A stretch of 61,944 bases of DNA, filler included, from Choristocarpus tenellus KU-1152 (lineage: Eukaryota; Protista; Phaeophyceae): the NCBI GenBank assembly GCA_964200185.2. It is 8 parts of 8 records of this genome, joined end to end, with 100 filler letters (N's around TTAATTAATTAA, not from the genome) between each part and the next. Parts side by side here need not be neighbours in the genome. Positions count along the whole stretch, not along the records: positions 59,357 to 61,944 come from CAXNAD020026497.1; 7 more parts are not named here. One strand, written 5' to 3'. The notes beneath the pieces are model-generated. The model saw only the letters and a list, made by a program, of their open reading frames with translations. It had not been told where the DNA came from and searched no databases. A program made the translations under genes and the position numbers. Positions 35,001 through 61,944 of this stretch are shown piece by piece. Every line of letters begins with the position of its first letter. Positions within the stretch are counted from its first letter, which is position 1.

Positions 35001-36259
35001 TTCTCCATGCGTTTAACACAGGACATGCGTTTGCGTGCACCATATGACCACCGACCTATTGGTCCAATGCCTGAGGGAAAACTGGAACAAAGTACACTGT
35101 CGGACGGTGGTTGGCGACGATGGCCAACGCACTTGCGCCTGTACCTGCGAGTTCTGTGACAAAGGCAAGGGTTGCGGCTCTGAAGATGTGAAGATTGCAC
35201 TGGAAAGCGCTATGAATATGATGGACTTCCTATTGTAAGTAGTAATCTTATCCTGGCCCGAAGCTTAAACTACAACCTCCAACTAATATGAAAACATCGT
35301 ACAATATCAATACCACATGCAGATACCACCCTTCCACATACACACAAACCCACAAACGAAATGACTTCTCTCATTCATACCAGTTGTGGTACATGCCCAA
35401 CGTTGGCCAACTTGCCCATACACCATTCAAACACAAACAGTAGCATTTCATTATCCTACTCGGGACATTTACCGAATCCCCCCACAATTATCCCAATACG
35501 ACTGCCAAGGTGTGAGAGGACCACCCTCAAGCCCCTCTGTTCGCAGTCCACAAGTGGTTCAGAAGGTGGTTATCAAACATCTTGTGTGGATGGAACATGC
35601 AAGACTTGCGACTGGACTAATCAACCCATGTGGAAGTGCCCTTGTATGATCAACGCCCACAGTACCACGGCAACATGGAATGAGTTTGTCCATGCATACA
35701 CCCCGATTGTGGAGGGGGACCTACCAGGAAAGACAACGAAGGAGATCAAGGTGAGTGTGTGTGACATGTGCCTATGCAAAAGGGAAACCCTGCAACACCA
35801 TGCATGTGAATTAATTACAGTTATGAATCTCTCTATTGTGGTGGTATCGGACAGGAACCCTCACCCCACACTTTGTTTTTGGGAAAAAAACATTCTTTCC
35901 ATTTCAATAACACGCCCCCCACTAACACCAAACACAACCCCGTTCTTAAACTTGCCATATGCCTAAAGGCACTGTCATCTCGTCTTGGGCTCTTGACCCC
36001 TAACGGCACAACGAAGGATGAAATAATTGAGAGGATAAAGGCGAAGCACACGGTATTCAGGGCCAAGAATCTAATGACCGACGATTTCATCCTTGCCACT
36101 TGCATGGTGGGCGAATCGAACCCCATCTCGAGGAGGACAACAACCGAAGAGAACTACGACGAAGACCACACTGAGTCTTCGGACAAGGCCAACACGAAGA
36201 GAAGGTCAGTACGTGGTAATCGGGACCAAAGGGATGCGGTGGACACCGCACACCTGTGA
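32061..36259 (+). mobile_element. Intron-rich Sola2-like transposase pseudogene lacking the DDE core
   Basis: Approximate exons 32061-32301, 33282-33857, 34255-34494, 34671-34808, 35022-35234, 35510-35750, 35970-36259; spliced peptide has STFVKWRPFYITK...RTCVCVHH, CVDGTCKTC and a C-terminal SAP-like LGLLTPNGTTKDEIIERI. Confidence 0.6.
32440..33150. repeat. Tandem repeat, 305-bp unit, ~2.3 copies, inside a transposase intron
   Basis: ATCGGAAATGAAATCG at 32463 and 32768; third partial CAGTGCTTCATAGGAG near 33107. Confidence 0.92.
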
Positions 36260-36606
36260 TGAAGTGTTTTGCCTTCTCCAGTACTGATCCCCATCCCACA
36301 TACTCCACGAACAGCTATTATTGTTGAGATATTGACATTACCTCCGTTTACGTCATTTTTGTGCAATATAGGCTAGGCAGTCTATAGGGAGTTATATGTT
36401 TAGTGAACAGTGGAATACAATAGAAGTATTGACTGAGTAGAGTTAGGGTCACGGATTTGATTTGGTGTGCTTAGAATCAGGTTCGAGTCTCGATGGATTG
36501 ATTTACTACTTTTGTTCAATATAAGTGGCTGATGTAGTGCGACTGACACAGACACATTTTGACGTGTCTGATGACGTGCGCAATAGATAATAATATAAGG
36601 AAGAGC

Positions 36607-36706
36607 NNNNNNNNNNNNNNNNNNNNNNNNNNNNNNNNNNNNNNNNNNNNTTAATTAATTAANNNNNNNNNNNNNNNNNNNNNNNNNNNNNNNNNNNNNN
36701 NNNNNN
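36607..36706. other. Artificial contig linker
   Basis: N44-TTAATTAATTAA-N44. Confidence 0.99.
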
Positions 36707-36775
36707 CAAAAATCGCGACATAAAAAAATTGACCCCAAATGGACAGCCGCCACCCCCTCCCAGATACTTTGAGCC
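36707..36775. mobile_element. MITE family B end, truncated at contig start
   Basis: AATGGACAGCC...CCCAGATACTTTGAGCC; matches 60540-60602. Confidence 0.8.
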
Positions 36776-37262
36776 TGAACATCTTTATTGCATAGAGCAA
36801 AATTGCACACTGTGGCATGCTGATATCAACCATCTACATCAAGGTAAATCAGGGTGAGACAGCTTGTACCTCCATTCGCGGTCGTGTCAGTGGGTATCCA
36901 ATGAGCAGAAGATCTATCCTGTAGCAACTAACTTTCTAAACAAGGTCGATTGAGGTGAAATCGAGCCAAAGTAAATGAGAGGTATCCAGTTTCTTGGTCG
37001 TTTTTCGTTTGAAATCACACTTTTCATCTTTTTTGAACGTGCCCTTATTTCTATGGAGGACGTGCTAGGATTGATAAGAGACCAGCAATATCTGTATTTC
37101 CCCCCAAAAAATCGATAGAACTCGGAAAATTTCCTCAACACACTTGTGGAAAAAGTCGAATCTGGAACATATGCCATCATTCTCCGAATGCAATCCTGGG
37201 TATCCCTCATTTACTTTGACTCAGCGTCGAAACATGACAACAAAAAATGAGAGGGAACTTAC

Positions 37263-37413
37263 CACTGTCTGCTTCCTCGTCATTAAAGGAATCAGGGCAG
37301 CATGAGTACTTTAGCTCTCCATAGCTGGAGAGGAGGCCAGCACCGTAGGCCTTCAGCTCTCCCCTCTGACGACAGAGCCCAAACTCAACAGAGAACCAGT
37401 AGCACCGTGCCAG
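37263..37413 (-). CDS. PAH: Biopterin-dependent aromatic amino-acid hydroxylase (phenylalanine 4-hydroxylase), internal exon
   Basis: [34 protein letters not shown]; AG/GT boundaries; phase 0 with the upstream exon. Confidence 0.92.
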
Positions 37414-38374
37414 CTGCCGGGGCACAATGCCCGAAAAATGAGTTAGTCAGGACAAAGTCTTGTGGTACAGTAGGCATTGGTCGCAACCCTACACTTTCAA
37501 CACAATGGTTTCAGTCTCTGTCCTGCTGTAGGTTGAATGAACGGGAATGGAGGAGCACAGACTGTGTTGAGGTGTCTAGGCTGTGTTGAGTCAGAGAGAG
37601 AAATATGGGGACAAAATTGGAGGGTCATTTTGTCCATCGGATTGGGTTTCTTATGCGCAAGGTCCTTGCTAGGAGGTCCATCATACCCACCACACGGCCC
37701 AAGCTTCAGAGAGAATACACCCCGGAATACACACTTCTCTGTCAATTTTAGAAGGTTGGTTATCATGGTGGAGGTTAGGTAGGGCATGGGGCACACTTCA
37801 GTTGTACAATTATATACTAAAAATGTAAAGGTTTTACCAGATAGAGTACTGCCACCCTGCCTCACTTGGACCTCCTCTTGAACTGTGATCCCTAGAGTTG
37901 GAGGCGATTGTTCTATGAAATAAGGTAATATTTTAGCTCAAAGGTTGATATTTACACATTGGTATCTTGAAGAGTGTGTGCAAAAGCACCCTTCCAATAT
38001 GCGTATCAGTATCAAAACCGTTTGCCCCTCATGATCAATGTCGTATCATCCGGATTTTTGTTCAGTCCGTTCTCCACCTACATCACTGCAGTGGATGTGG
38101 GTACACGATTCAACATACTCCATGTAGCTTAAGATGAGCAAGTGGTAATGCACTGCGCAATGATATTCTATAGGCCAACTGATATGTCCACCACTCCTTC
38201 TCCAGCTCATAATCTCCTAGCACTTGCTAGACATATGATATATGCTGATCCAGCATGTTCCAAAAATATCTTACTTCCATGGCAACTTCCGCCCTAAGCT
38301 ATACAAACTCATCCTTTACTCCCACCTTCCCCATCACACAACAGCAAGAAGACATAGGTGCAGGGTTCTATCAC

Positions 38375-38525
38375 CTTTGTTATCTCCTCGTCCGAGGCCC
38401 CCAAAGAGGCCAACCCAAACTCCTGGGAAAAATCGGCAAAGTCGGGGTCAGCAAACATTGGAGCGTGACCAAGCAGTTCATGGCAGAGATCCGGCTCAGG
38501 AGTGTAGTGTGGACGTGAATGGTGC
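38375..38525 (-). CDS. PAH: Phenylalanine 4-hydroxylase, internal exon with iron-binding histidines
   Basis: [50 protein letters not shown] signature. Confidence 0.93.
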
Positions 38526-39443
38526 CTTCCCATCCAATGTTTGTAGGTGAAGGCAGTACACAGATCCGTATCAATGCAGGTAGACCAGTGGAACAGATAT
38601 AGGTGTGGTGACTTGTGAAGGGGAGAAAGAGACAAGAAAAAGAGAGTCTAGTCCGTTCTAGGTGTCCTCGAAGGGGAGAAATATTTGAGTTAATACACAG
38701 AGTTGGGGAGATATTTGAGTGAAACAATTGAGATGCAGGCAGGTTGTTACTCTTTTGCAGACCATTTCCCTTACCCAGGTACAATAAACCCTATTAAAAT
38801 TGCTGCATGTGCATATTTTGTCCACAAACTTTATGTTCCCCCTTTCCACACACAAAATGACATCACAATTGAGCAATGGCCCTTTCAAAAAAAAACTCGT
38901 ATTTTGATCATTTCTCAGTATCCTTGAAATGTAACCTTACCTACCTCTCAACTGCTTGACTCTTTGCCCTTTTCTATTTAGCACGTTCAGGAGTTGTGCA
39001 ATCTCGTTGGTATTGGGTAGGTAAAAGAGAAGAACTCTGTCTTTTTGGCACAGTTTGATGTGCTACATGAATCAAACGAATAGACAGTCGCTCAAACTGC
39101 AGGAGGATGGTATCTTTTTTTTTAAGCACAAAAAGCAGCACTTTCGAACTCTAAAATATCAGGAACATGCTCCGATAAGGCATACAGTATCAAGCATCGG
39201 AAGGAGAAAAAAAAATGCTCACACGACGAACTGCAGATATGATGAAATTCAAAGGGAGAAGAGCACTAGCACAAACTGCTTGTTCTATTGACATTTGTAC
39301 GCCAGCTGACATCATCAACAACACACGCAAACACACTGTATATTATTTTTTAACTGTTGGCCTCTCACCGAATGTATTGTGTGCTGAAGAACACCCTGAA
39401 GGCCAACCCATTAAGGAAATCTCTTGAGGACAGTAGGCCTGCC

Positions 39444-39530
39444 ATCGGATGGATAATCTAAGTACACTTCTCCTGGTCAGGGCCCGAATGGACACCCTGG
39501 TGTAGACCCCCCCCCCCCCCCCCCCCCCAA
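39444..39530. mobile_element. MITE family B fragment
   Basis: CACTTCTCCTGGTCAGGGCCCGAATGGACACCCTGGTGTAGACCCCC matches 61174-61220. Confidence 0.75.
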
Positions 39531-39590
39531 ACCCCCTCCACTTTTTCTTCTTTCTCAATTCATCTTTTTCCCTCCTTAAGACCAGACTCC

Positions 39591-39690
39591 NNNNNNNNNN
39601 NNNNNNNNNNNNNNNNNNNNNNNNNNNNNNNNNNTTAATTAATTAANNNNNNNNNNNNNNNNNNNNNNNNNNNNNNNNNNNNNNNNNNNN
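39591..39690. other. Artificial contig linker
   Basis: N44-TTAATTAATTAA-N44. Confidence 0.99.
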
Positions 39691-39838
39691 GTGAAATGTG
39701 TATGTGATGAAAGGTGTGTCCGGAATAAGGATGCTGACACTTCCTAACAAACACGATAGCCAAAATTATATCAAAATGGCAACATTGGATTGTGCCCCCC
39801 AAATGGACGCGGCTCTACCCTCTAAGATACTTTGGCTC
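39691..39838 (+). mobile_element. MITE family A, truncated at contig start
   Basis: Ends TACCCTCTAAGATACTTTGGCTC. Confidence 0.9.
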
Positions 39839-39929
39839 TTCTTCTCTCGCAGATTCCTTGAAAATGCAAGACTCTTAAGATGCGCATCAAAGCCTTACAT
39901 TGAACTGGAAGTGCGTGACGGGGCATGAC

Positions 39930-40475
39930 GAGGGACCGATCCGTGTGAATGATATTTTAACGGGACCAGTCCATGACCATCAAAGAGAATAATCGGACCA
40001 GAGCCATTGAGACGTATTATTCAATTAAACGGACCATGGACAACCCAGAAAAAATATGATGCATAATGAAGGCCAGACCTGGATCGTCAAAGTGCATTTC
40101 CAGACTGGGAATGGCCTAGCCCTATCCAGAATATATCATAACAAGGAAGCTCCGTGAGTATGACTTGGTGAGATAGATCAAATGTGTTCATTCCCATTTT
40201 TCACCATATCCGAAAGGGCGAGTAGGATAAACTAGAAAAAATGATAGACCAGGACCAGTCCAGACCCATCAAAGAATAAAACCGGAGAGGACCGGGCTGG
40301 GTAAAATATTTTTTAACAGGGTCGGACTAGGGCCATCGAGATTTTAAACTGGACCGGGTCACGGGCTGGCATGGTAATACGTTTTAAAATAAGGCAGGAC
40401 CAGGGAGCATCAGGATTGTAAACAGGACTGGGTCGTAGAATGGGTCATGGGTCCGATTCAGCCAGACGGTCCAGT
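39930..40475. repeat. Degenerate minisatellite-like array of GGNCC/GGACC clusters separated by AT-rich spacers
   Basis: Recurrent GGACCAGTCCA.GACC(C)ATCAAAGA and GGACCGGG motifs at irregular 30-45 bp spacing. Confidence 0.55.
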
Positions 40476-43400
40476 TAGCTGCCTATCCATCGTAAGACCC
40501 TGATATTATCATGATGGAGCCTATACATGAAACAATATCCCGATCGTACAATAGCAGATTCATATAGGATACAGTGTGCTATTATATTGATGGATCCTAA
40601 ACAGAAATAGTGACCCCAAATTCCTAGGGCACTCTTGACAATGTCGCACACAGTAGAAGAGAGTAACACTTTGTTTTCAGTTTAACTCCTAATAAACCGT
40701 ATGATATTGTGGGATGTCTTGGACCTCCAGTAAGCGAGGTATTAGCAGGCATGTCTAGCAATAAACTTGGACGTTGATGGTGAAATGTTGGTGTTGCAGC
40801 CTCATCCCACCAACATTGTATCTACAGCAACACTCACACAGAATAATAAAGAAGTAAAGCAATGCAACAGGATGACACGGTGGTATCGAGACCCAGTCAA
40901 CTAGAGCTCTCCTTGTACAAGCCAACCTTGTATGCCCTTAGTGCCAGGGTTGTGAAGCAGGCAAGAGTATCCCCATCCCCCCGATAGGTGAAGTTTAGGA
41001 CCCGGGTAGGAGTGAAAAATGGAAGCATTATTCTTAATAAGTCACCGCAGACCACCTCACAGCACAATCTACCTTTTACCATGCACCAGGTGTAGATGGG
41101 GGCTAAAAACCTCCGAGAGCTTATTGATCTTGTGTCACTTGCTTGTTGCACAAGAAAAAGCCCGATGCCCTTGCTTACTGCTTGTCAGAAATAGTATGCC
41201 AACGTGTGCATGTGACTTTTGTACGTGTCAAGGGTGACACGGAGATACTCATGAGATCGTCATATTAAGATAGTGTGGGACAGGCAAACACTCCCTTGAG
41301 TATGTCAGTGTCAGGTTCTATAAAAACCTACAATAACTAGCCTTTAGAACTGTTTTCGAAAGTCCGTAATTAGGCACGTATGCGTACTATAGGTTTTACT
41401 GTCAGGGCAGTTGGATGGTGCCGTGCACTACTACCATATTATTAATACTAGTATTTTGAATATTTAGTAACAAAGGTTATATTTAGAGGTGCACAATGAT
41501 TAATCGATTAATCTGGAGCATTTGACAAGCGACTTGCCAGCCTTGTCAAATATTCCATAGTATTTTGTTCATGAAGCACAGTCAACCGTTTATCAATCAT
41601 TCAATATGTAGAACTTGTTCGGAATTCAACAGTAAACCATATTCAATTGCTTCAACCAAAGAAGTTTTTTTTTTGCAGTTAGAAAATACTACGTACAACA
41701 AGTACTTCAAAACAATTTCCCAACAGAACATGCTCACAACACATAGTTGTCAAAAAAGACGATACACAGGATCTCGAAGATATATATATATAAAAGTGTT
41801 AGTGATCTCAGCAAGCTCTGCCAGGCCTTACAGCACACAGATACTGCCTAAGAAAGTTACAGAAATAGGAAGCCGTTCGGGTGACTTGTCTCGATCTTCT
41901 ATCGGTTTCGAACGATATCCAGTCCAGCAGCAACAGTAAAAGGCCATATTATTGTTGGAATCTGAGGATTGGTAAAGTAGCGTTTGGCTGTGTTGTGTAG
42001 GTGACTATATGACAATACAAAGGGGAAGGAGTGGGGGGGCGCCATCCACACACGCGTACGCACGCACGCACATTAAGAATAGTTTCATCGTCCCGCTGCA
42101 CTGCCAAATATCTACTCCACAGTACTACTACCATAAATAAAGCAATACCTGGATTATTAATGGTGAACACATTAATATGACAAAAAAAAAAAAGTTCCAA
42201 AGGGTGCGAGGGGATAAAAGTTCGATGCATGTTTGGTCGAACAAATAATACTCTGGAGTAGGTAGGAAAGGTGTTGATACTGCATTATTTGATGTGTGTG
42301 TATTTTATTCGATTGGAGTACATATTATTTTTCACTCCAAACTAAAGCAAAAGCACATTGTAGTGGAGTCTGTAGTACAACTATATGACTAACAACACTC
42401 AGCATGCGACTAATAATAAAGGAAAACGTGCGCGACCTAGCTTTTACAGAACATGATATTGTCGTAATCGGGTGCCTTATCAACACCATGCTTGTTCCCA
42501 AGTATTGATACCACAGTGGTAGTATTTTGAAACAACAGCTAACAACCGTTTTATCACCAAGAGATATGTCACTGAACCTGTATCTATTCGCCACGGCAAT
42601 TTATTGTACGAGTAGATAAGGAGACACCAACCTCATGCCTTGTGTTTGTAAACTACATTTGATCTCCACAATAAGCCTGCTAGTAGTTAGAACATACAAT
42701 TATTAGTAGTATTATTCAATAGCAAGATAAGGTTAAGTTCAAGTATTAGCGCAACATCCCTATGATGCATGTTGTAGTCAGTTATTGGTGTGGATCCGAG
42801 TGAAACTTACAAATTGTACTACTATCAGCCTTCCGGGGTGAGATTGAGGACGGTTTGATTTTTCGCGCGCATTTTAGACGCACGATTTTATAAACCGACA
42901 AATGATATCGTACTGGTTAGGTAATAGAGTCCGAAAAAAGTCAGTTGTCGAAACATTATTCTGTTTCGTCAATGAATTTCAGGGGTTCGAACCCCTCTCC
43001 ATACAGCAAGATCACGAGTAATTCTAGAGAGCCAAAGGGGGAAAGTTTCGAATATCTTGGATCTAGTTACTTCGGTGGAATTCCTGACGCCATGGTAGAT
43101 TGTGATAGGTGTGCTGTTTTTAATAGTTCAAGGGGAATAGGTAAACATGTGTGTGGGGGGTTATCCTTGTATGATTTTCTACGCGTGATCGTACGCACGA
43201 TCAAATGGAATGTATTAAGCTACTTCTACACCTAGCAAGAGCGACTTCCTTGATCCATAAGTAAGCACGATTGTCCATTGCATTAATATCATCCATAGGT
43301 CACTGCCATGGATAAATTCTTCTGATTTTTCCAAATTCGACGTCGCAAATACTGCAGATAGATTTTACACCTATACATAACCTGTACTGTTCGATGTGTT

Positions 43401-43715
43401 GCTATACAACAAAAACCCCAGACCAAGAACGAGGTGACAACGCTTCATTGCCGCCAACCAATGCTGTGGGAATCAAGGCACAATCCGAGACAGTACAACA
43501 AGTCGCATTGCAACATAAAGTTTCAACAGTAGGTGTGTGTACAGGACGGTATAATCCCCAGTCCCCGAACTACAGAGTGAAGAAATCAATCAGAGTATAT
43601 AACAGGGGTGGCAGGATCGATATATTAGTATATTTGGTGTGGGTCTTGTCACGCCCCAAATCGCACAACAAGCAGCCACATAATCTAATCACTTTCCCAG
43701 AATGCATCCAGCAAA

Positions 43716-43972
43716 GAGCCAAAGTAACTTTGAGGGTAGAGTTGTATCCATTTGGGCGTCAAAATCCAATGTTGCGATTTTGATGTAAGTTTGGTCATGT
43801 TTGTTAGGAAGTGTCAATATCCATGTTCTGGACACACCTTTTCATAACATACATTTTACCGACTCCGAAATATTTTGGAGTAGGTAAAATGTCATAAAAT
43901 AAAAACATGGGAAGCCAAGCCTCGCATGGACAAACAGGGCAAAACTCGTACCCTCTAAGATACTTTCACTCC
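43716..43972 (-). mobile_element. MITE family A, full length
   Basis: GAGCCAAAGTAACTT ... TAAGATACTTTCACTC; flanks (C)AAA/(C)AAA. Confidence 0.9.
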
Positions 43973-44157
43973 AAAACACTCTGGTCAGATGAGTTTGGCA
44001 TGACTTGCACTTTGCAAACTCTGAGACAGATTTTCTACTGCAGTCTAGCAATGTCTCCACCTCTGTTTGGATTACTTCCTCCCAGTGCAACAAGGTGTTC
44101 GTAGATAGTGCTGCTGATACACTATAGACACCACTGGTGGATTATGTGATAGGGTAG

Positions 44158-44257
44158 NNNNNNNNNNNNNNNNNNNNNNNNNNNNNNNNNNNNNNNNNNN
44201 NTTAATTAATTAANNNNNNNNNNNNNNNNNNNNNNNNNNNNNNNNNNNNNNNNNNNN
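44158..44257. other. Artificial contig linker
   Basis: N44-TTAATTAATTAA-N44. Confidence 0.99.
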
Positions 44258-44452
44258 ATATAAAAAAAACAAAAAAAAAAAAAAAAAAAAAAAAAATTGA
44301 AAAAAATTCCCCCCCCATCCCCCCCCCCCCCCCCCCCCCACCCCCCACAACCAAGAAATCTCAAACATACCAAACACATTCAGCAACTATTTTATTTTTA
44401 TGTCCTACAGTCTGACACACTCGATTGAGGGAATAAAATTAATGAAACGCAC

Positions 44453-44638
44453 CTGCTCAATGCCAAAGTTCCTGTTCCAGGAGTTGAGCACGCCCAGCTT
44501 ATGCTTGTGGACCTGTCCACTACGTTGGTCGACACAACCCAAGTTGAGACGGCTAACAAACCGGACGTCTGGGCAAGTGTCTGGGTAGTTTTCCCCGCAG
44601 TGTAACCTCAATGTGTACAGCCTGCCCTCATGTTGGGT
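44453..44638 (-). CDS. UEV1: Ubiquitin-conjugating enzyme E2 variant (UEV1/MMS2), internal exon
   Basis: TQHEGRLYTLRLHCGENYPDTCPDVRFVSRLNLGCVD...WNRNFGIEQ; AG/GT boundaries. Confidence 0.92.
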
Positions 44639-45703
44639 CTGGCTTAGGAGGGGTGTGTGGATGGGGTACAACAGTAGGGCACAAACAGGGTAAGGGTAGA
44701 TATTGGCAAAAAGCAACTCAGGTTTGGGGATTTTCTCAGCTTAGATCAGGGTGCACAATGATAGAGAGGGGCACATGACCTTGGGTCTGAGATGGGCAGG
44801 AAGGAACATTCCACTCTTTCAGGCAGGTTACTCACAAGCAGGAAGATGAAAAGCAGAGCAGGCAAATTGAATTAAGAGAGCCGGTGTAAATAGGCAATGC
44901 AAGACATCTGTTGCAAAAAGATAAGGGGAGTTCCCTTTTACACAATAGTTGGTGAGTTCCAACCTGCAGGAGCATTCCCACTGTGTATACACACATCAGC
45001 ATCAAAATACTTCTCTGAGCACGACCGGTGCTTTGATAAGGTGAAGAGAATAGCCCTTCCATTTTCAATCACTCATCAAGACTGGTGTTGCATTGATTCC
45101 AAGTACATCTCTGGTACCCATACTATCAAGTATGTTGGAGTACATACGTGCATCACTAAACAGATAAACAGCAAGGGATCCTTACTTCAGACTTCACAGG
45201 AACATTTTCTCCCTGTTTGAACAATAGCCCAAGTCTTACGAAAATGTAAGCCTTGTTTCTAAACATTCCAAATGGAGGCATACTCTGTACACTCAAAAAT
45301 AATAAATAAAAGATCCCAGTCGAAGGGTAGAGAACGCATGGCGTCTTACCACACGAGGTCACATTTTCTCTACACCACTGTTGCACCAACTAGCCTGTGA
45401 ACACCCTGTGGCATATAACCCATAGCACTTTTCATTTTTCAATGGCTGTCCATGAGGGATGCAAAGTTAATTTCCTCGTGTATATTGGAGCATACTTTAG
45501 GTTCCTGAACTTCAAATTAGAGAGGAAATGGGTGGAGTTCAAGATATCTCACACAGAAAACACCCACAAATCTCAAATCACATGATAAAAAAGGAGCTTC
45601 CTTTGAAAAAGACATGAAATATCACCATATCCATTCTCCTGTTTTTGTTGAAGCAGATGCGAAAAGTGCTTGCCTACACACCTCACATATCTCTTGAACT
45701 CAC

Positions 45704-45843
45704 CCCATTCGGACCAAGGATTGTTCCGTTCCAGTCAGTCATGAAAATGTCCTCCCCATCCACCAGGCCGAAGCTTACGCTGTGGTCACCCACTCCCTTC
45801 TCCCCCTTTTCCAGCTCTTCCAACAGCTTAAAGTTCCGTGGAA
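45704..45843 (-). CDS. UEV1: UEV1/MMS2 exon
   Basis: (V)[46 protein letters not shown], the conserved UEV N-terminus; first and last exons not located. Confidence 0.93.
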
Positions 45844-47792
45844 CTGAAGGAATTGAGATCATGAGATAACATACTGGGTAAGAGGATTTGACTTTGATGC
45901 CTCCCAGACATCGTACTACTCAAGAAGGCTTGGCATACCCCCACCAGCCATTGGCTAGATAAATAATGAGCATGCTGTTTCCTTGAGCCCCACCCCAAAA
46001 CCTTCAAAACACTCCAAACACAAGGTGCAAGTATGATGAGGCACCCTCATTTATTACATACCTTACATTCGCAGGCACAACCAGTAACCCCAATAGATGA
46101 ACATCTACAGCATGTTGCCACAGATCTTCCAGGTAGCTCTGCAAAAGGTAGGGTAGAAATACTGTGGCCATTCTACTCCCTGAGATGATTTACAGCCAGC
46201 AAATGAAATCTTACCCCTACCTGGGACTAAAAAAAGAAACCCCTGGAAGACTTTATTTGATCACAATCACAATCACCATTAGTATTGAATACCGCATCTC
46301 AATGCGCCTCTATCAGCAAGAACACCATGAGTGATGGGTGAATTGCCACCAGGGAGGGTAGCAAAAAACTTGCTGGATGGGATGCATAGATACTCCGATA
46401 AATGTTTTGAGGGATTTTGTGAGTACTATCCTCGGGCAAGTCCATGACCTACAAAGGATATGAGTTTATTTATTACAGTAATCGGATGGTTTGAGTTGTT
46501 CGTCCCGCAGGGCCAATGTGAACGATAGGAGAGAAGGCGGAAACAACCAGGCCACGCCATCTCAGACACATGCCGTAACACGAGCCTTCCTTATACATGT
46601 TCGTTTGCATATGGCTATCTAATGATGGCGCCATCCTCTCTATCAGGTAACTTGACGTTACATGCAGTTATGATCTACGGGCGCGCTCTCTGATCTGCAA
46701 GTGTTGCCCTTGCTTACTTTGACTATATGACAACCAACAACAAACTCGAGGGGTACTGGCGGGAAAATTCCACACTCTACATCCAAGTTCTCAAGCACAA
46801 TCGACGAGGTGAGACAAGAGCCTGCATTCGACTCCCTTGGCTCATCAAGCCATGCCTTAGAGAGAAAAGAAGCGAAGTACAAGAGGACACGGGAAACAGT
46901 CAAGGATCCAGGACGCTGTCAACGATCCCAATCCAAGCAATGAAGGTACGCTCTAACCTATGATTTAGCAACTGGGGCTGAAACAAATTCAATTTCTGAC
47001 AGAGGCACAAGGTTTCCTCCCTTTGAAAGGTTCCAAACAGCACACACCTAAATATGCCTTCCCCGTGCCCGCAGGTCTAGAGGACAGGGTATGTAACTCC
47101 TGCTAGAGCTTCTTGTAGACTCGGGGTCTAAATCCGTTAGCACCAAACTTCCCAGTTAACGGTATGTCGTCATAATTGAGTCCTAGAGTCTTCTGAAGTC
47201 CAAGGGAACACGACAACAACTACAAAAATAATACCCTTTTCGCTCCAATTGCTGGAAGACCAGGGGTCCAAGAATCATTATAGTTGAGTGTGCTTGTTTC
47301 GATAGGCGTGCGGAGATCTCTTCTTCGTACGGCATCTTGCCTTGCACCTTGGAAATATATATATGTTAAAATGCCCACGGTTCGCCTCAGGTTAGAACTT
47401 CATTTAGGGGAACTTTCCCGAGTCATGCTCACCCATGATTACTTCTCCGGTCGATGTGGTCATCATGATGCTGCAGATGATTATCCAGACAAAATTGTAG
47501 GGTGTATGCAATGCCCTTATCCCTTGCGTTGCCTGGCAGAGCACAACGCTGGATTCACTAGGGGCTTTGTGTTCCCCACCCCAATCTCGAAGAGGACTTC
47601 GACTCTCCACCAACTTCCCTAACCCTACAGTATGGTTGAAACTACATACTTCAAACTTCACACTGATATATATACCTTGATATTTTTATATTTGTACACT
47701 GCTAATCTTGTGTTCGCGTAACTTCGTTTACAACTCGACATACGATGCATTAGAACACCATGGGACCGTTCAGTCCCTCAACCTGACAAACG

Positions 47793-50299
47793 ATGCCTAG
47801 CGATTCCACAAAGGATGTTCACCTAGAGGCTCGACCCTGGGGGTGGTTATTTCGCGCAATTTGGTTCTGCTCACCAAGGGAAGGAGAGGAAGGGGTTCAC
47901 GCGCAAGGCTCCTGTCCCGTCGTGCTTAGAGTTCCTGATACTGTGCTTATCGAACATGGCAAACCACAAAAGTGGCTGGGATTATCTTCAAGGGGAGTAT
48001 TGGTCCGCCGAAGCTTTCACGCAAAAGAGTCAATCTCGGTAACAAGTCCAATGGCTTCATTAGGACACGAAGGGGAGATTCAGAGACATAGGCGTAAAGC
48101 CGGTGCCCAGGGAGGATCTTCACTCAGTACTCCCGATGAAGAACAAGTTCGAGATCGTATCCACACCATCCGAGACGCTTTTGTGGCGTTCGTTCAACCA
48201 CCAGACACAGATGCACCATTGTGCATGGCCTGGTACAAAGATGGGACAAACGAGGTGTTGTGCACTAGGAGCCTTGACACTCTTTCAGGGTTCCAGAATT
48301 GGTTAGTATCTCTTGCTGGTCTCCAGGCTTATATTCGACCCGCTCGCACGGGAACAGGAGTTTACAATGTGGTAGGGGATAGACATAATCACTATTCCAA
48401 GTCAAATTGGCAAAGGTGTAAAGAACTTAGTCTGAGCAGGGACGGAAATAGAGCAAGTAGCACAGCCTCGAATCGCAGAATCGGCGATATTCAATCCGTC
48501 AGCACCCATTCAGACGCGGGAGTTTCTAGTATAGAGATTCTCGACGATGTAAGCTCTGTGTCATCTTTCAGCGCACTGTCAAGTACCCCCACTGATCCTC
48601 ATGGGGAAGTCCCCATCGCTCCCCACAACCATGTTCTGGATGCTTGTGCAGCAGAACTCGCATTTGTGGTCGAGGCGTCTTGTGCAATGCCAGATTTCAC
48701 CATTTCCACTCGAGACGTAAGGTCACAGAATTTCCTAGGAAAACGGCGCTGGACAGGTGCCGAATCTCAGGGGGCCCATTTGGGGAAAGGGAAGGTAGCA
48801 GAAAAGGGATCACCACTCAATGGGAGGGATAATTGCCGCCCCAAACCCTGCGCAAACCTCTTGGTGGCTCGTCTCGAGGCAGAATTTATTGTTGACGATG
48901 ATGGTCATGCGTGGTTCAGTCACCCCCTAGAGATCATGGTGCAGCGGCGGGTACCAACGCACTTGCAAGTTGAGGCTGAGGTTGCAGAGGGTTGTGAGGT
49001 GGAGGAGCACGAAGTTCGGCATGCAGTAGCTGCTGCCCAAAATTTGAAAAAGCTTTTGGGTTTGTCATATAGACGGGGTCTAGAAGTGGCGGATGCCTTC
49101 CGTCATTTCGATCCTAACAAGAGAGGTGTTGCAGGCCAGCAAGAGTTGAGGGAGGGCATGAGACGTCTTGGGGTTAACCTGTCCCCGGAGTCCACAAGGA
49201 TAGTGATTGGGCTGATCACAGACACCCCATTACCCGACTCCAGATGTAAGAGAGATTTCTCTTCCTGTGAACACAATCTGATCTCCAGAGCAAGAGGAGG
49301 GATCAATGAGCAGGCTCAGGGTGGTCAGACCAAGCAAGGAGATGAGGAATGTCCTGTTGACACAAGGTTGCAGTTACTTCATAAAAAGGGACAAGAGAGA
49401 CGAGGGCAGAGGTCGTGGGGGTTGCAGGGTGGGAGGACCAAAATCAACGGACAACAGTATCAAGTGCACTCCTTCAACCTGGGAGATCTAGAACGCTTTG
49501 CTTCAGCTCCATTGAGAGTCGAGGGATATCTAGAGGAGGGTGCAAGAGAGGAGAAAGAGAGGCAGGTAGATTGGCTGAAGCAGAGAAAGAAATCGAGTTT
49601 GGTACAGCAAACCGAATTGCAGGACAGGAGTTGTGTCAATGCAAGCAGCACCAACAGAGGATCAGCACTGTCCCTGGGCAAGAGGTCAAGGGAAAATGGA
49701 TGTTCACAAGACCAAGAGAAACTTGATCCTCAGAAACATGGATATCATTCCCCAGGGCAATATCAACACGACTGTATAAATAATTTTGGGAAAGATCCCT
49801 CACACATGGGTAGTAGCAGGAAATTTCAAGGCCAATGGTCAATCAAGTCGACTACTGGCATATCTGAACGGTTTTCTGATCCCAATACCCTAAGACACAT
49901 GCCTGCTCCATACCAAGGCCAGGTTCAGGAAGGTGCTAAGTATGCTAGGTTTGATAGTGTCGGCAAGGGGAAAGAACTAGAGGGGAGGCCGAGTCTGATG
50001 GGCAGGGGTGTCAGCAAGGAGGAAATAACAAGCAAGGCATTAAATATTGATGGAAGCCATAGGATTGCAAGGGGAGGGAATAGTAATAGCTATGGCTGCA
50101 TGAAGGATGGGGTTGAAAGGGATGACGAGAGTGACAACATGTGTGCTCTCCGAGACGCCAAACTGTGCCTCGGGTCCAGAAAATCTGGGGAGCCAGACGG
50201 ACTCCTACCCTTATCAGTACTGGAGTGCACCTCCTTTCCATGTGATGACCTGGTGGCAGAGGCAGCTTCTGGTCGAGACTCCGTTTTTTTTGTGGACCG
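47793..50299 (+). CDS. Large protein with EF-hand-like motif, long first exon
   Basis: 836-aa open frame; AFRHFDPNKRGVAGQQELREGMRRLG EF-hand; donor CG|GTGAGT at 50300. Confidence 0.85.
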
Positions 50300-50728
50300 G
50301 TGAGTTATAGATGATTGTCCAGCAAGGTCAGATGTTCAAGCGGTGGGGGATTTGAGCTTATTGAGGAGAGAGGTTCCTGGGGAATTGGTCTTCAACATTG
50401 ATCAGAAAATATACTTCTTGATACTGCCATCTACACTTGAGGCGGACAGAGCAATGTTAGATTCCAATGGCCACTTTCAAGCCCATTAATGCAAACCACC
50501 CTTTGCCTCAAGAAGGGTATGAGCATCCATTGACTTTCATCCTTGACTGCTCCCTAATCAATCTCCCTCAAAGTATGGGGCCTCCAAAGCAATTACGCAT
50601 CCCCAGCCCGTAAAGCCCATATCTCCCAATTAACTGAAACATATCTCTTAAACCCATATCATTACGCTTTACGTGAAGCAACATTCCCCATATCGTTCGA
50701 TTCATTTCCTTGCCCCCTTCACCTTCAG

Positions 50729-51107
50729 AGGACTGGTGATTGCCTACCGGCTGCTCAGACATTCGAGGAGTCATTCTATGGACCAAGCCTCAGTCGCTCC
50801 ACGTCCCAATTCAGTCAGTGCTCCAAACAACACAGCAGATCGAGACAATTGGAGGATGCTGCCTCGTGCTGGAATGGAACAAACAGCCAAGAGACTGCCG
50901 GACTGGAGTGCAGATAACACCTTCTCTTCAGGACAAGCCCCTGTTCTATTGGTTGCCATACCCGGGGTGTTTCAGACACTAGATACATTGGAAAATATTG
51001 TCTCCCCTCTGCTGGCGGCACATAGTGGAGGGCTCATGGTACTGCTGGTGGGTCCACCAGGGTTGCCCAACACTCATTGGCGGTCAGGGATGAATCTCAC
51101 TGGAGAG
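50729..51107 (+). CDS. Second exon of the same gene; start of an alpha/beta-hydrolase-like domain
   Basis: Phase-compatible acceptor TTCAG|A; PVLLVAIPGVFQTLDTLE...VLLVGPPGLPNTHW; donor GAG|GTGAGC. Confidence 0.75.
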
Positions 51108-51917
51108 GTGAGCGTGATAAGGACTCTACTATGTAGCAAAATAGGAGCTGTGAAAAAGTCATCCCATGTGATGGAAAAGCAAGTAAGGAGGGTCTAAGAC
51201 TTCACGCCAAGTATTTGATCTTGTTGCAAAGTTGAATTCGCGAGACCAGAAAATGAACCTTGCATTGTATTTGTTGGCGACCGAGAAATAGGGACCTCTG
51301 TTGAAGTTTGCGGCTGTAGAAGCAAATGATGAATGGCACAATGGGTTATAATGATGGCGATAATACTATTCCAGAGTACACCAGTACAGGGTTTAAGGTG
51401 CTGGAGGTGTAGAACAGAAGAAGAAGAAGCACAGTTACACCGATAGAGCAGTAGGATGCATTTGCCATCGTGAGCAATATGTGTAACCCTTTCAATCATA
51501 CCTCATTCTCATAATTTTCGCCTCTTGAAGCAACTCTCTTGATTGGACAGTTAGGTGCTCAGGAAACATAAGTGTTTGCAGCGGAAGAGAAAGAAACAGA
51601 TCACAGTGTCTGAGAGCATGTGTTTTTTTTGCCTTGAACAGCATTATGTTTGGTGCTAGCGTTATCCTAGCTCGTTCAGTCTGCAGCCAAGATAGTTCAC
51701 AACGAAACTCCTCCAGGACAACAACTTCAAGCCCATTTGCTCAAATGAATGCCACCCAGAAAAACTCTTAGAGTACATTTGCCCTATGTCCGTTGTCCAG
51801 ACAATAATCGGATTCTGTTTCGGTCTGTGACATGCATCGTTCCTCACAACACTTAGAGCCCGTCTCTTTGCGACACCCATTTTGTCCATGGCAACATTCT
51901 ATTTAACGCCATCACAA

Positions 51918-52180
51918 GAGTCAAAACATTAAAGAAGGTAGGGTTGCGTCGGTTCAGGATCATAAATCCAAAGTTGCGAATTTGATGCAATTTTGGCTAT
52001 CGTGTTTGTTTGCAAGTGCCAATAAATATCCTTGCTCTGGACACACTTTCCATAGCGGTATACATTTTAGGTAACTGTGTTCACACAGAAAACCGAAAAA
52101 GGGCGCAAAAGACCCGTGGAAAGTCAAGCCCCGAAAACACAAACAGAGCAAAACTCCTACCCTCTTAAATGCTTTGGGTC
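51918..52180 (-). mobile_element. Diverged MITE family A copy
   Basis: Decayed TIRs GAGTCAAAACATT ... TACCCTCTTAAATGCTTTGGGTC; flanks CAA/CAA. Confidence 0.75.
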
Positions 52181-52668
52181 CAATTGGTTTAATGTTCATT
52201 CAAAATTGCCTACAAGAGAGTTCAACGTCCAGGACAGACCTTGGAGTCTTTTCACTCAAAACGGTGCGATCCAAGTACAATGTTCAGAGTCCTTTTTGAT
52301 CTATACCAAACCTTGTCCAGTGCAAAACTCAGAGTCCATTTCTTTCCAGCACACATCTTGTCTGGGTTAGCACTCGGATTTCGTTTGCTCTGTAACCATC
52401 TCTTTACAGGACAAGGCTTGTGACCTTTTTATTCTGTGACGCACACATCACCATGTCTACAACATGCGAGCATTTTAGGTCAAAGCTTCAGGAGCGGTTT
52501 TTTGTTTTCCATTCATAGGATGAAATATGCATGTGTTCAAGTAAAGTGTTGATTCTACACAATTTGTTTCCTATTTTTGAGGGCACACTACACTGAAAAG
52601 TTTGGCCTTCTGGCATGATGATGGGTCGGTAAACTACTGCACAAAGAAATCACACGATTCAAAAGAAG

Positions 52669-52905
52669 GAGTCAAAGTATCTTAGAGGGTAGAGCCGCGT
52701 CCATTTGGGGGTCAAAATACAATGTTGCGATTTTGATGTAATTTTGGCTATTGTATTGTTATGAAGTGACAATATCTATGTTTCGGACACACCTTTTCAT
52801 AACATATACATTTAACCTACTCCTAAACAATTTGGAGTAGGAAAATGTCATGAAAAGCCCACGGGAAGCCAATCCCCAAATGGAAAAAAAAAGAAAAAAT
52901 CGTAC
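52669..52905 (-). mobile_element. MITE family A, truncated at contig end
   Basis: GAGTCAAAGTATCTTAGAGGGTAGAG start. Confidence 0.9.
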
Positions 52906-53005
52906 NNNNNNNNNNNNNNNNNNNNNNNNNNNNNNNNNNNNNNNNNNNNTTAATTAATTAANNNNNNNNNNNNNNNNNNNNNNNNNNNNNNNNNNNNNNN
53001 NNNNN
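52906..53005. other. Artificial contig linker
   Basis: N44-TTAATTAATTAA-N44. Confidence 0.99.
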
Positions 53006-59356: not shown

Positions 59357-59957
59357 GGGTACGACTGACCATTGTGTGTTGCCAGTGGGGATGTATGTCG
59401 TTCTCATGCTGGAGGTCTGTGCCAGTGTAAATGATAGGTTCCACTACTGCATCGGTAGCTGTTCCTCGAAGTGCCTGAGAACAAACTGGAACAAGCGTTT
59501 CCGTGCCAGGGGGAAGGAGTATCTTTTTTACTGTGTGCAATGGTGTATTGAATTCAGATGTGATTACTGAAATTGAAGCATGAGATGCAGTTTCTGTCTG
59601 GCAAAAATCTTTTGGGGGGGAACAGATGGGAAGGGGTACGATTTTGTCTTTTGCTGGAATGCATTGATCACTGTCTTTAAATGACATCTCCTCTCTATCC
59701 CAATCTAGCACTGCCCCAAATGCCGACATAATACTGTTATCCAACAAAATTTTATCTACTCCCAGATTAGGTATGACCACTGCTTGGACAGGCATTGATA
59801 TGTCACCAAGTTGTAGTATAAATTGAATGAAACCAGATACAGAGAGAGGTCTACTGGATGGCGCGCGCAATTGTATATGACCGCGCGTCTTATACATAAG
59901 GTGTGTGTCGGAGATCCCAAAAAGGAACCTGTCCCTGACACAACTCATTGTAAACAT
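59357..59957 (-). mobile_element. Ty3/Gypsy LTR retrotransposon pol fragment (retropepsin C-terminal half)
   Basis: LRAPSSRPLSVSG..LQLGD..AVVIPNLGVDKILLDNSIMSAFGAVLDW matches the retropepsin flap and ILG.DFL...ID region. Confidence 0.65.
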
Positions 59958-60421
59958 TATATACTGCGTAGTACTATGCAGTAGTTAGGCATCGTAGCTT
60001 CCGTATAGGTGCAGCATTTACACTGTTTCCCGCCGTTGGGATGGGTTCTTTTGCGTTCAAGAAATTTGAATACTACACAGAAGCAATGCTTCCACAACAT
60101 TTTTGGTTGTTGTATGTTACAATATAAACCTACCCAGCCTGCATAGAGCTGCAAAATTTGCACTATCTCGTGTCATAGACCTCTGACCCTGTTTTGGACG
60201 TATTATTATTACGAGTTTCCTACAGCACGGTTTTGGAATTTTTCCGTACAACATCACACGCAGCACTCACTATGTTTTGACCGTAACACTCAAAGTCAAC
60301 ACAAAACGTACACATACATACACACATACGTAACACATACAATGTGTCTCGTACCACTAGAACCTAGAACATAATGTGTAAGTTACTGTTAAATACTATC
60401 TTGTAGCACTACACAACAAAA

Positions 60422-60602
60422 GGCCCAAAGTATCTGGGAGGGTGCAGGGGGTCTACAGCAGGGTGTCCATTCGGGCCCTGACCAGGAGAAGCACACTAGC
60501 ATCATCTATCCGATTCATGCAACCAAATTCATCCCAAAATCGCGACAGTGAAAAATGAGCCCCGAATGGACAGCCATCACTCCCCCCCATACACTTTGAA
60601 CC
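60422..60602 (+). mobile_element. MITE family B (~180 bp), full length
   Basis: GGCCCAAAGTATCTGGGAGGG ... CCCCCATACACTTTGAACC; flanks AAAA/AAAA. Confidence 0.85.
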
Positions 60603-60696
60603 AAAAACCCGACAAATGTTATGCCGAATGTCGTAGCTCTCCTGTCCAAAACATACATACCATACGTGAGTCGAAGTAAACTATGACAAATATCCA

Positions 60697-60959
60697 CAAA
60701 AAGTTGTAGTATATCTGTAAAGGTAACTGCTCTAGTCCCGTCAAAAGTCGAGTATGTTGTAGCTATTATACAAGCAGCAATATTAGCTATATAGCTAGGC
60801 ATATGCAAAAAGTAAGAAAAACTGCCAAAAACTTCCAACTGTACTGCAATACTACCAGCAGCACCAACAGTTCCTGAAAGAGCAGTAATAATCCTCTTTT
60901 CTTTGACGTAAATCTACCACTGCTTAGGCAACAGACGTCTTACCGAGGAACTCTCCCAC
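60697..60959 (-). pseudogene. Bacterial-type sodium:solute symporter (PutP/SSF) gene fragment
   Basis: VGEFLGKTSVA*AVVDL / frameshift / RIITALSGTVGAAGSIAVQLEVFGSFSYFLHMPSYIANIAACIIATTYSTFDGTRAVTFTDILQLF contains the SSF signature YS..GG..AV..TD..Q. Confidence 0.8.
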
Positions 60960-61064
60960 TTTATCATGCCATTTACCTTGAAGCAACCGGCTAAATCTTG
61001 CACTATTTGCTTTTTTCTACTTTTTTTAGTACCAAAGTGATTAGATCAGATTGTTGCTTTGTCT

Positions 61065-61235
61065 GCCTCAAAGTATCAGGGGGGGGTGGTTGGCTGTCCA
61101 TTCGGGGCTCATTTTTCCATGGCGCGATATTGGGGTAAATCTGGTTGCATGCGTTGGATGGGCAATATAAGTTCACTTCTCCTGATCAGGGCCCAAATGG
61201 ACAACCTGGTGTAGACCCCCCAGATACTTTGAGCC
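61065..61235 (-). mobile_element. MITE family B, full length, inverted relative to the 60422 copy
   Basis: GCCTCAAAGTATCAGGGG ... CCCCAGATACTTTGAGCC; flanks TCT/TCT. Confidence 0.85.
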
Positions 61236-61904
61236 TCTTATCAATACCTAAATGCTATCCGAGTATCTCTTCAAGCTTCGACTCACTTAATACTCCTTGT
61301 AACCAATGATCACCATTTTCTTGTCCCAATAGAGCCGAAAATACTCAGTTGGTACATACTCATATTTTATAGATCTGTAAGCCCCATTAAGAAACACTGG
61401 TTTTCAAAACATTAATTTTTGTAAAATCATGTTCTTCTAGGCGCTTTTTTGTTAGATTTTTTGCTTTGTCTACACCATGAAAGTCACAATGTTATCTTTT
61501 GATGGACATGCTTCAGCGCATTTATTTATCAAGATTGAACCTTGAGCATCAAGAACCGCAGGACTTACAAAGTTTTTCTGATGCTATAAGCTCTGTATAT
61601 ATTTTCTTTCCTGTCTTGCTCCTGCTCAACCGTCTCTTGAATTTCAGAATCAACCAAAGCAAATCTATTATTCACTATGTTCACTTCTACCTCCAATTAA
61701 ATTATTTATTTAAATTGTTCTCTTCAAGGAAATCTAGTGTGAACCTTATTCCTCAAGACAATCTTAGTACTTCTTCCAGAGAAATAAAATAAATATGAGT
61801 GAATTGGAAAATATGAAAAAAAAGTGGCTGAAAATGCAAAAATGCCAAAACCCAGGTACCTCTCGTTTGCTTTTGCTCCGTAATGCTCATAACGCGTTGG
61901 TTCA

Positions 61905-61944
61905 GGGTCAAAGTATCTGGGGGGTGGGGGTGGTTTGTGAGGGG
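61905..61944 (+). mobile_element. Foldback-family MITE start, truncated by window end
   Basis: GGGTCAAAGTATCTGGGGGGTGGGGGTGGTTTGTGAGGGG matches the 21502/21585 arm. Confidence 0.8.

Follow-up and report, generated by a model that had tools for sequence, protein, structure and literature searches.

A probable relic of Rickettsiaceae-like bacterial DNA among host repeats in the genome of the brown alga Choristocarpus tenellus

Introduction

Is a short, broken stretch of bacterial-type coding sequence that lies between repeats of the brown alga Choristocarpus tenellus a piece of bacterial DNA that entered the algal genome and decayed there, and if so, which kind of bacterium did it come from? 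Among brown algae, the species belongs to a lineage that was one of the earliest to branch off. Past intracellular associations leave few lasting traces, and dead bacterial DNA in a eukaryotic chromosome is one of them. The original prediction for this locus read positions 60603-61064 as an intronless minus-strand remnant of a sodium:solute symporter (SSF) gene of a type found in intracellular bacteria, inserted horizontally between two host MITEs, and took it for the fossil of a possibly undescribed endosymbiosis. On the evidence presented below, we regard the locus with high confidence as a dead, non-functional relic of Rickettsiaceae-like bacterial DNA in the nuclear genome of C. tenellus, and we are more reserved about the nature of the association from which it came.

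Results

Positions 59357-61944 of the window (the whole stretch of DNA that was analysed, 61,944 nucleotides) are the complete 2588-base contig CAXNAD020026497.1 of assembly GCA_964200185.2, which has >26,000 contigs. We aligned to this piece the Logan contigs of three runs that carry one organism label (X1, X2 and X3), and the depths given here were taken from those contigs, not from raw reads. X1 and X2 share a single study of origin, and the assembly may itself have been built from them, so agreement with it does not count as independent evidence. The features of the contig are as follows.

59357..59854, minus strand: Ty3/Gypsy LTR retrotransposon fragment, an open frame upstream of the reverse transcriptase (depth 1,000-9,000)
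59855..59940, no strand: second high-copy host repeat (~1,600 copies; summed depth 40,031)
59966..60421, no strand: unique non-coding host DNA left of MITE 1 (depth 21.5 in X1, 6.6 in X2)
60422..60602, plus strand: MITE copy 1 (AAA/AAA flanks; summed depth up to 36,338 in X1)
60603..60696, no strand: single-copy spacer from MITE 1 to the relic (depth equal to that of unique DNA)
60697..60965, minus strand: SSF-domain gene relic, Rickettsiales-type (phmmer, tblastn, DNA alignment and tree)
60966..61064, no strand: single-copy spacer from the relic to MITE 2 (alignments and tblastn)
61065..61235, minus strand: MITE copy 2 (TCT/TCT flanks; summed depth up to 52,902 in X1)
61236..61904, no strand: mostly unique A+T-rich DNA right of MITE 2 (34% G+C; depth 29.7 in X1, 7.1 in X2)
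61905..61944, plus strand: MITE copy 3, its start only, cut by the contig end (reads diverge before 61904/61905)

The repeats on this contig belong to the host. MITE 1 and MITE 2 are inverted to each other and 80% alike over 153 bases; the family has members of ~171-181 bases with G-rich terminal inverted repeats and no coding capacity, and a summed depth of 36,000-53,000 against ~25 for unique DNA in X1 corresponds to ~1,400-2,000 copies. Both complete copies are bounded by 3-base direct duplications, which are short enough for chance, and reads of other copies diverge from MITE 2 at 61235/61236. A related MITE lies at positions 2449-2620 of another C. tenellus contig of the same assembly, CAXNAD020000587.1 (hereafter L062), which has an intron-bearing gene model. 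The Gypsy fragment is 90.6% identical in DNA to L062:6176-6684, where reverse transcriptase, RNase H and integrase frames follow in Ty3/Gypsy order, and the second repeat is ~90% identical to two other places in L062. The surroundings first described for the fragment, two host MITEs with short flanking duplications and a Gypsy relic on the same contig, were thus found at the coordinates listed.

Several smaller observations concern these flanks. The Gypsy fragment abuts the ~1,600-copy repeat, and since reads of other copies diverge exactly at 59854, we take this position as the junction of the two. Three MITE copies within 1.5 kb are far denser than the genome-wide average would give. Beside MITE 3 there is a further small host repeat, since 50 bases at 61824-61873 are 84% alike to L062:17562-17611 and have a depth of ~890. 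The unique DNA left of MITE 1 contains an imperfect ACA/TAC-rich microsatellite-like run (60299-60341) and gave no protein, RNA or tRNA matches over 59966-60421; the interval 61236-61904 holds no recognisable gene and no homology to SSF-kinase genes or their neighbours, and Rfam families and tRNAs were absent from the whole piece. The spacers and the right-hand unique DNA have a G+C content of 34-39%, against 44% for L062, which would fit a once larger insert, although homology does not support one. A 14-base inverted repeat (60663-60676/61276-61289) was set aside as being at chance level, with ~0.5 expected by estimate. We also dropped the idea of a composite transposon, in which the two inverted MITEs would have carried the relic, as the inner part is single-copy by depth.

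Homology to bacterial genes is confined to ~60697-60965, so that the core of the range 60603-61064 originally given for the fragment stands and its outer parts, 60603-60696 and 60966-61064, align with nothing. The recognisable part is intronless, measures ~270 bases or about 90 codons, and corresponds to residues 92-185, approximately, of a ~950-residue protein; it is truncated at both ends and contains neither the gene start, nor the gene end, nor the kinase part. Its main stretch, 60913-60698, reads in one minus-strand frame (tblastn E 1e-18). A second stretch, 60962-60909, lies in the adjacent frame and continues the same proteins upstream (residues 93-110, by tblastn), which confirms a frameshift; this frame, which a TAA interrupts, carries the preceding residues up to the GEFLGK motif and slightly beyond it. 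The minus-strand peptide of the original prediction is present, and its stop and frameshift are the first two of the following lesions, where L001, L002 and L003 are the top three bacterial loci described below.

60924..60926, minus strand: in-frame TAA stop at a Glu codon of the relatives (translation and codon alignment)
60910/60911, minus strand: 2-base deletion within a Leu codon, causing the frameshift (pairwise DNA alignments to L001, L002 and L003)
near 60827, minus strand: 3-base in-frame deletion (the same pairwise alignments)

DNA alignments to these three loci have 67-69% identity (69% over 268 bases in the comparison with a Rickettsiaceae genome) and extend from ~60697 to 60958-60965, with noise beyond both ends. 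In the spacer on the MITE 1 side, 60603-60696, no homology was detected in alignments, and an in-frame extension of the relic in that direction was unconvincing once the alignments had been read. No homology was detected in the other spacer either (60966-61064), and the well-conserved N-terminal part of the gene is missing both from this interval and from beyond MITE 2. Searches of the contig by tblastn, tblastx and blastn, in which 227 relatives and 61 loci were compared with it, recovered no more of the donor gene and none of its neighbours outside 60697-60986, and tblastn found HisKA and HATPase_c domains nowhere on the contig. Instead of a complete ~400-residue transporter core in one open frame, there are only the ~90 codons with their stop and frameshift.

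The family of the relic was evident from its relatives. A direct Pfam scan of the fragment found no PF00474 match, the NCBIfam model TIGR03648 (sodium/solute symporter) reached an E value of 0.038 only, and the other open frames of the piece gave nothing significant in Pfam and NCBIfam scans. A phmmer search of 1.84 billion representative proteins returned 107 proteins at E <= 0.001 (best 6e-15, 56% identity), almost all of which align at their own residues ~110-185. The PF00474/SSF domain is present in all nine of the matches that we scanned, and six of the nine also have HisKA and HATPase_c domains (lengths 929-970 residues). A structure search gave only weak matches, in which the same region aligns with the solved SSF transporters CHT1, NIS and vSGLT. 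The motif Y-S-x-x-G-G-x-x-A-V-x-x-T-D-x-x-Q of the relatives is present at the end of the matched stretch, with its first Gly changed to Asp in the relic, and the relic departs from the family consensus, which has 7 invariant and 11 nearly invariant columns, at three columns of the second kind (Gly to Val, Lys to Glu and Gly to Asp). By these significant sequence matches, the relic is assigned to the sodium:solute symporter family (PF00474).

The same comparison changes what the parent gene is likely to have been. Most relatives are proteins of 900-1200 residues that join a histidine kinase to the SSF domain, and a minority are SSF only or truncated; given this prevalence of fusions, the relic probably descends from a sensor kinase gene instead of a plain symporter gene. 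The proposed SSF assignment held for the domain, which all nine scanned relatives carry, and probably does not hold for the function implied by the name. SSF-domain sensor kinases exist elsewhere, for example CbrA of Pseudomonas, in which, as in the relic's nearest relatives, a histidine kinase accompanies an N-terminal SSF domain; nothing of a kinase part is left on the contig.

The family is expanded in intracellular bacteria. Putative sodium/solute symporters number 19 in Amoebophilus asiaticus and 12 in Cardinium hertigii (PMC8831229), and we found many SSF paralogues in Rickettsiaceae by the genome scan and a protein-cluster search. Members that we fetched from Rickettsiales and from Cardinium/Amoebophilaceae are mostly 900-1200 residues long, and those of Rickettsiales end in HisKA and HATPase_c domains, so the members resemble sensor kinases more than plain transporters, and "symporter" probably describes the expanded family only in part. 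The relic shares the family consensus of the Amoebophilus, Cardinium and Rickettsiaceae paralogues around the motifs that the original prediction gave as typical of them, and the consensus agrees with that wording. It differs from the living paralogues in its size of ~90 codons, with stop and frameshift, against their 900-1200 residues and, in Rickettsiales, their two kinase domains. In bacterial genomes, SSF-kinase paralogues are often truncated or split into short frames (L063:5001-7651, L002, L004, L016, L021, L026, L028 and L043). Turnover of the SSF-kinase family in these symbionts seems to be rapid, and damage to the donor copy could predate its transfer.

We scanned one genome for each of 185,579 species of bacteria and archaea and obtained 61 loci, which rank as follows by identity to the relic.

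Rickettsiales bacterium NORP64 (L001): 69%
Rickettsiaceae MAG (L002): 62%
Rickettsiaceae MAG (L003): 60%
Megaera, Tisiphia, Rickettsia and other Rickettsiaceae: 36-53%
Cardinium, Amoebophilaceae and other Bacteroidota: at most 50%, and >45% only over short partial segments

Alignment at the DNA level was obtained with the top three loci only. The closest relative, NORP64, is an environmental MAG without a known host. Close relatives sit in compact bacterial neighbourhoods, such as groES/groEL and murC-murB-ddl-ftsQ. In a maximum-likelihood tree built on 92 usable alignment columns, the relic adjoins L001 within a six-member clade (98/89) that also holds L002, L003, L005 and the Megaera symbiont of Nemacystus decipiens, and the Rickettsiales side is split from the Bacteroidota side (Cardinium/Amoebophilaceae) at 98/88. 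Forcing the relic into the Bacteroidota clade made the tree 23.5 log-likelihood units worse, with an AU p of 0.053 that is borderline because there are so few alignment columns. The signal as a whole rests on ~270 bases and these 92 columns. The claim that the fragment derives from paralogues of intracellular bacteria agrees with the scan and the tree, in which Rickettsiales are closest and Cardinium/Amoebophilaceae form the sister group.

We looked for a closer donor in several collections. The L001 protein, searched against 5.8 billion protein clusters, returned many more paralogues, several from NORP64 alone, and none of these is >66% identical to the relic over 88 residues. A metagenome scan did not find a closer donor (best 59%), and a viral collection contained a single relative, at 37% identity. 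Because the relic is at most 66-69% identical to any known bacterium, its donor is best described from these comparisons as a Rickettsiaceae-like bacterium that is itself not among sequenced genomes.

The tree and the species-genome scan place the relic within a bacterial clade and not among eukaryotic genes, as had been proposed, and the best matches are bacterial. This placement bears on the idea that the fragment is a decayed paralogue of a working SSF-kinase gene that brown algae had once acquired. Such an acquisition would have precedent, given that ~1% of brown algal genes are reported to be of horizontal, mostly bacterial, origin (10.1101/2024.02.19.579948). However, no eukaryotic source was found among the matches that have a source name or whose contig was inspected, and a word-index search, which sees only proteins of similar length, found no short proteins resembling the fragment. 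The relic is also intronless, lacks both gene ends and is nested inside the Rickettsiales paralogues, and we therefore consider a host-family pseudogene very unlikely.

Is the bacterial fragment truly part of the algal genome? A single X1 unitig covers 60466-61120 without a mismatch at depth 25.8 and includes 137 bases of MITE 1, the whole relic and 56 bases of MITE 2; in X2, a unitig covering 60744-61105 spans the right junction. The relic is therefore physically continuous with host-specific sequence, and the MITE and Gypsy families both recur in L062. Depths in X1 were 21.5 for the left unique DNA, 25.8 for the relic and 29.7 for the right unique DNA, and the corresponding values in X2 were 6.6, 7.2 and 7.1, a match between the relic and unique DNA of the same contig only. 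Since unitigs break inside the MITEs, it is the assembly that connects the relic unitig with the Gypsy part. X3 covers the repeats only and has zero depth on all three unique stretches, a pattern that may reflect very low coverage, another strain or another type of library. The ratios of X3 to X1 depth vary from repeat to repeat.

These data are what we weighed against an assembly artefact or contamination, in which algal repeats would have been mistakenly joined with a read or contig of bacterial origin. The contig is small and comes from an assembly of >26,000 contigs, the supporting runs may be the assembly's own data, and X3 lacks the unique parts, all of which count in favour of a false join. 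Against this, the X1 unitig passes without error from MITE 1 through the relic to MITE 2, a second sample bridges the right junction, and the depth of the relic equals that of neighbouring unique DNA in both runs. A stop, a frameshift and an identity of only 66-69% to any known bacterium are unlike a fresh contaminant, and the contig holds no other parts of the donor gene or its neighbours. Contamination is unlikely because the relic is joined on both sides to a 2,000-copy algal element at matching depth, and we rate an artefact as the least probable of the explanations considered, marginally below even a host pseudogene. The original argument that decay and MITE flanks speak against contamination is borne out by the lesions, the bridging unitig and the matching depth, and the proposed horizontal insertion of bacterial DNA by the same unitig together with the bacterial tree placement.

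Decay of the relic was also visible in its substitutions. In a codon alignment, changes specific to the relic number 13, 10 and 16 at codon positions 1, 2 and 3, compared with 4, 3 and 22 for its sister L001 (Fisher p 0.006); when a different sister and outgroup were chosen, the contrast pointed the same way but was not significant (p 0.44). The terminal branch of the relic in the tree is 0.45, against 0.07 for L001. The even spread over codon positions, the stop, the frameshift, the truncation and the long branch together fit neutral drift after transfer.

Discussion

The reading we prefer, a dead bacterial relic in the algal nuclear genome, would have the following history. A short gene piece of a Rickettsiaceae-like intracellular bacterium would have been joined into algal chromosomal DNA, the likely route being end-joining repair of a chromosome break with DNA released from bacteria in or on the cell. 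The piece would never have worked in the alga, because its start, end and kinase part are all missing, and later neutral drift would then have added the stop codon, the frameshift, the codon deletion and the changes at near-invariant residues. The order in which the MITEs and the relic were inserted cannot be told, because the MITEs flank the recognisable part without interrupting it.

Nuclear relics of endosymbiont-type bacterial DNA are already known as a kind, and the present relic is a further example. Wolbachia-to-host nuclear transfers are found in arthropods and nematodes and are mostly non-functional and decaying, often amid host transposons. These are likewise fragments of a Rickettsiales endosymbiont that decay in host chromosomes; unlike the relic described here, they come from a donor in the Anaplasmataceae, lie in animal hosts and reach the size of whole genomes. 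In the green-algal case of Volvox carteri, a rickettsial insert of ~9 kb with four gene-like regions was PCR-confirmed in several strains (PMC4324946). It too is Rickettsiaceae DNA that sits in an algal nucleus, is read as the mark of an earlier association and does not require the bacterium to be present today, whereas the C. tenellus relic retains ~270 bases from a single gene, has a stramenopile (brown alga) as its host and is known from sequence alone. Capture at a chromosome break, the likeliest route, matches what is known of both the Wolbachia transfers in animals and the Volvox insert.

How the donor lived is a separate matter. We infer that it lived inside algal cells. Transfer could also have occurred without endosymbiosis, from a surface-associated or transiently taken-up Rickettsiales-like bacterium or by way of a virus. 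Brown algae carry many integrated giant-virus elements, which makes a viral carrier conceivable. The closest relative is an environmental MAG whose host is not known, and some Rickettsiales, such as Deianiraea, are extracellular (PMC10847448). On the other side, the relic's clade includes Rickettsiaceae and the Megaera symbiont of a brown alga, an obligate intracellular life is documented for Rickettsiaceae (PMC10847448), and the viral collection held just the one distant relative. We judge transfer without endosymbiosis improbable, though less so than either the artefact or the host pseudogene.

That an intracellular donor is favoured does not make the association an undescribed endosymbiosis. 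DNA transfer from an unsequenced Rickettsiaceae-like bacterium is the part of that proposal which stands; the endosymbiosis claim exceeds the data, because the relic is silent on how long or how stable the association was and because Megaira is already present in another brown alga. This member of the Rickettsiaceae is known from Nemacystus decipiens (PMC10132079). A preprint on brown-algal comparative genomics mentions neither Rickettsiales nor endosymbionts (10.1101/2024.02.19.579948). A larger reading, which we put forward tentatively and hold to be possible but not probable, is that C. tenellus or its ancestors hosted a not-yet-sequenced Rickettsiaceae endosymbiont lineage and that the relic is one of many scattered through the genome; if true, the whole set of relics could reveal when the association existed and which bacterium was the donor.

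Taken alone, the relic is tiny and functionless, and its value is that of a marker of contact between Rickettsiaceae and brown algae. It would offer a defined target for PCR surveys of strains and of related species. With a Rickettsiaceae-type relic present in Choristocarpus, the known contacts of this kind would reach one more brown-algal lineage.
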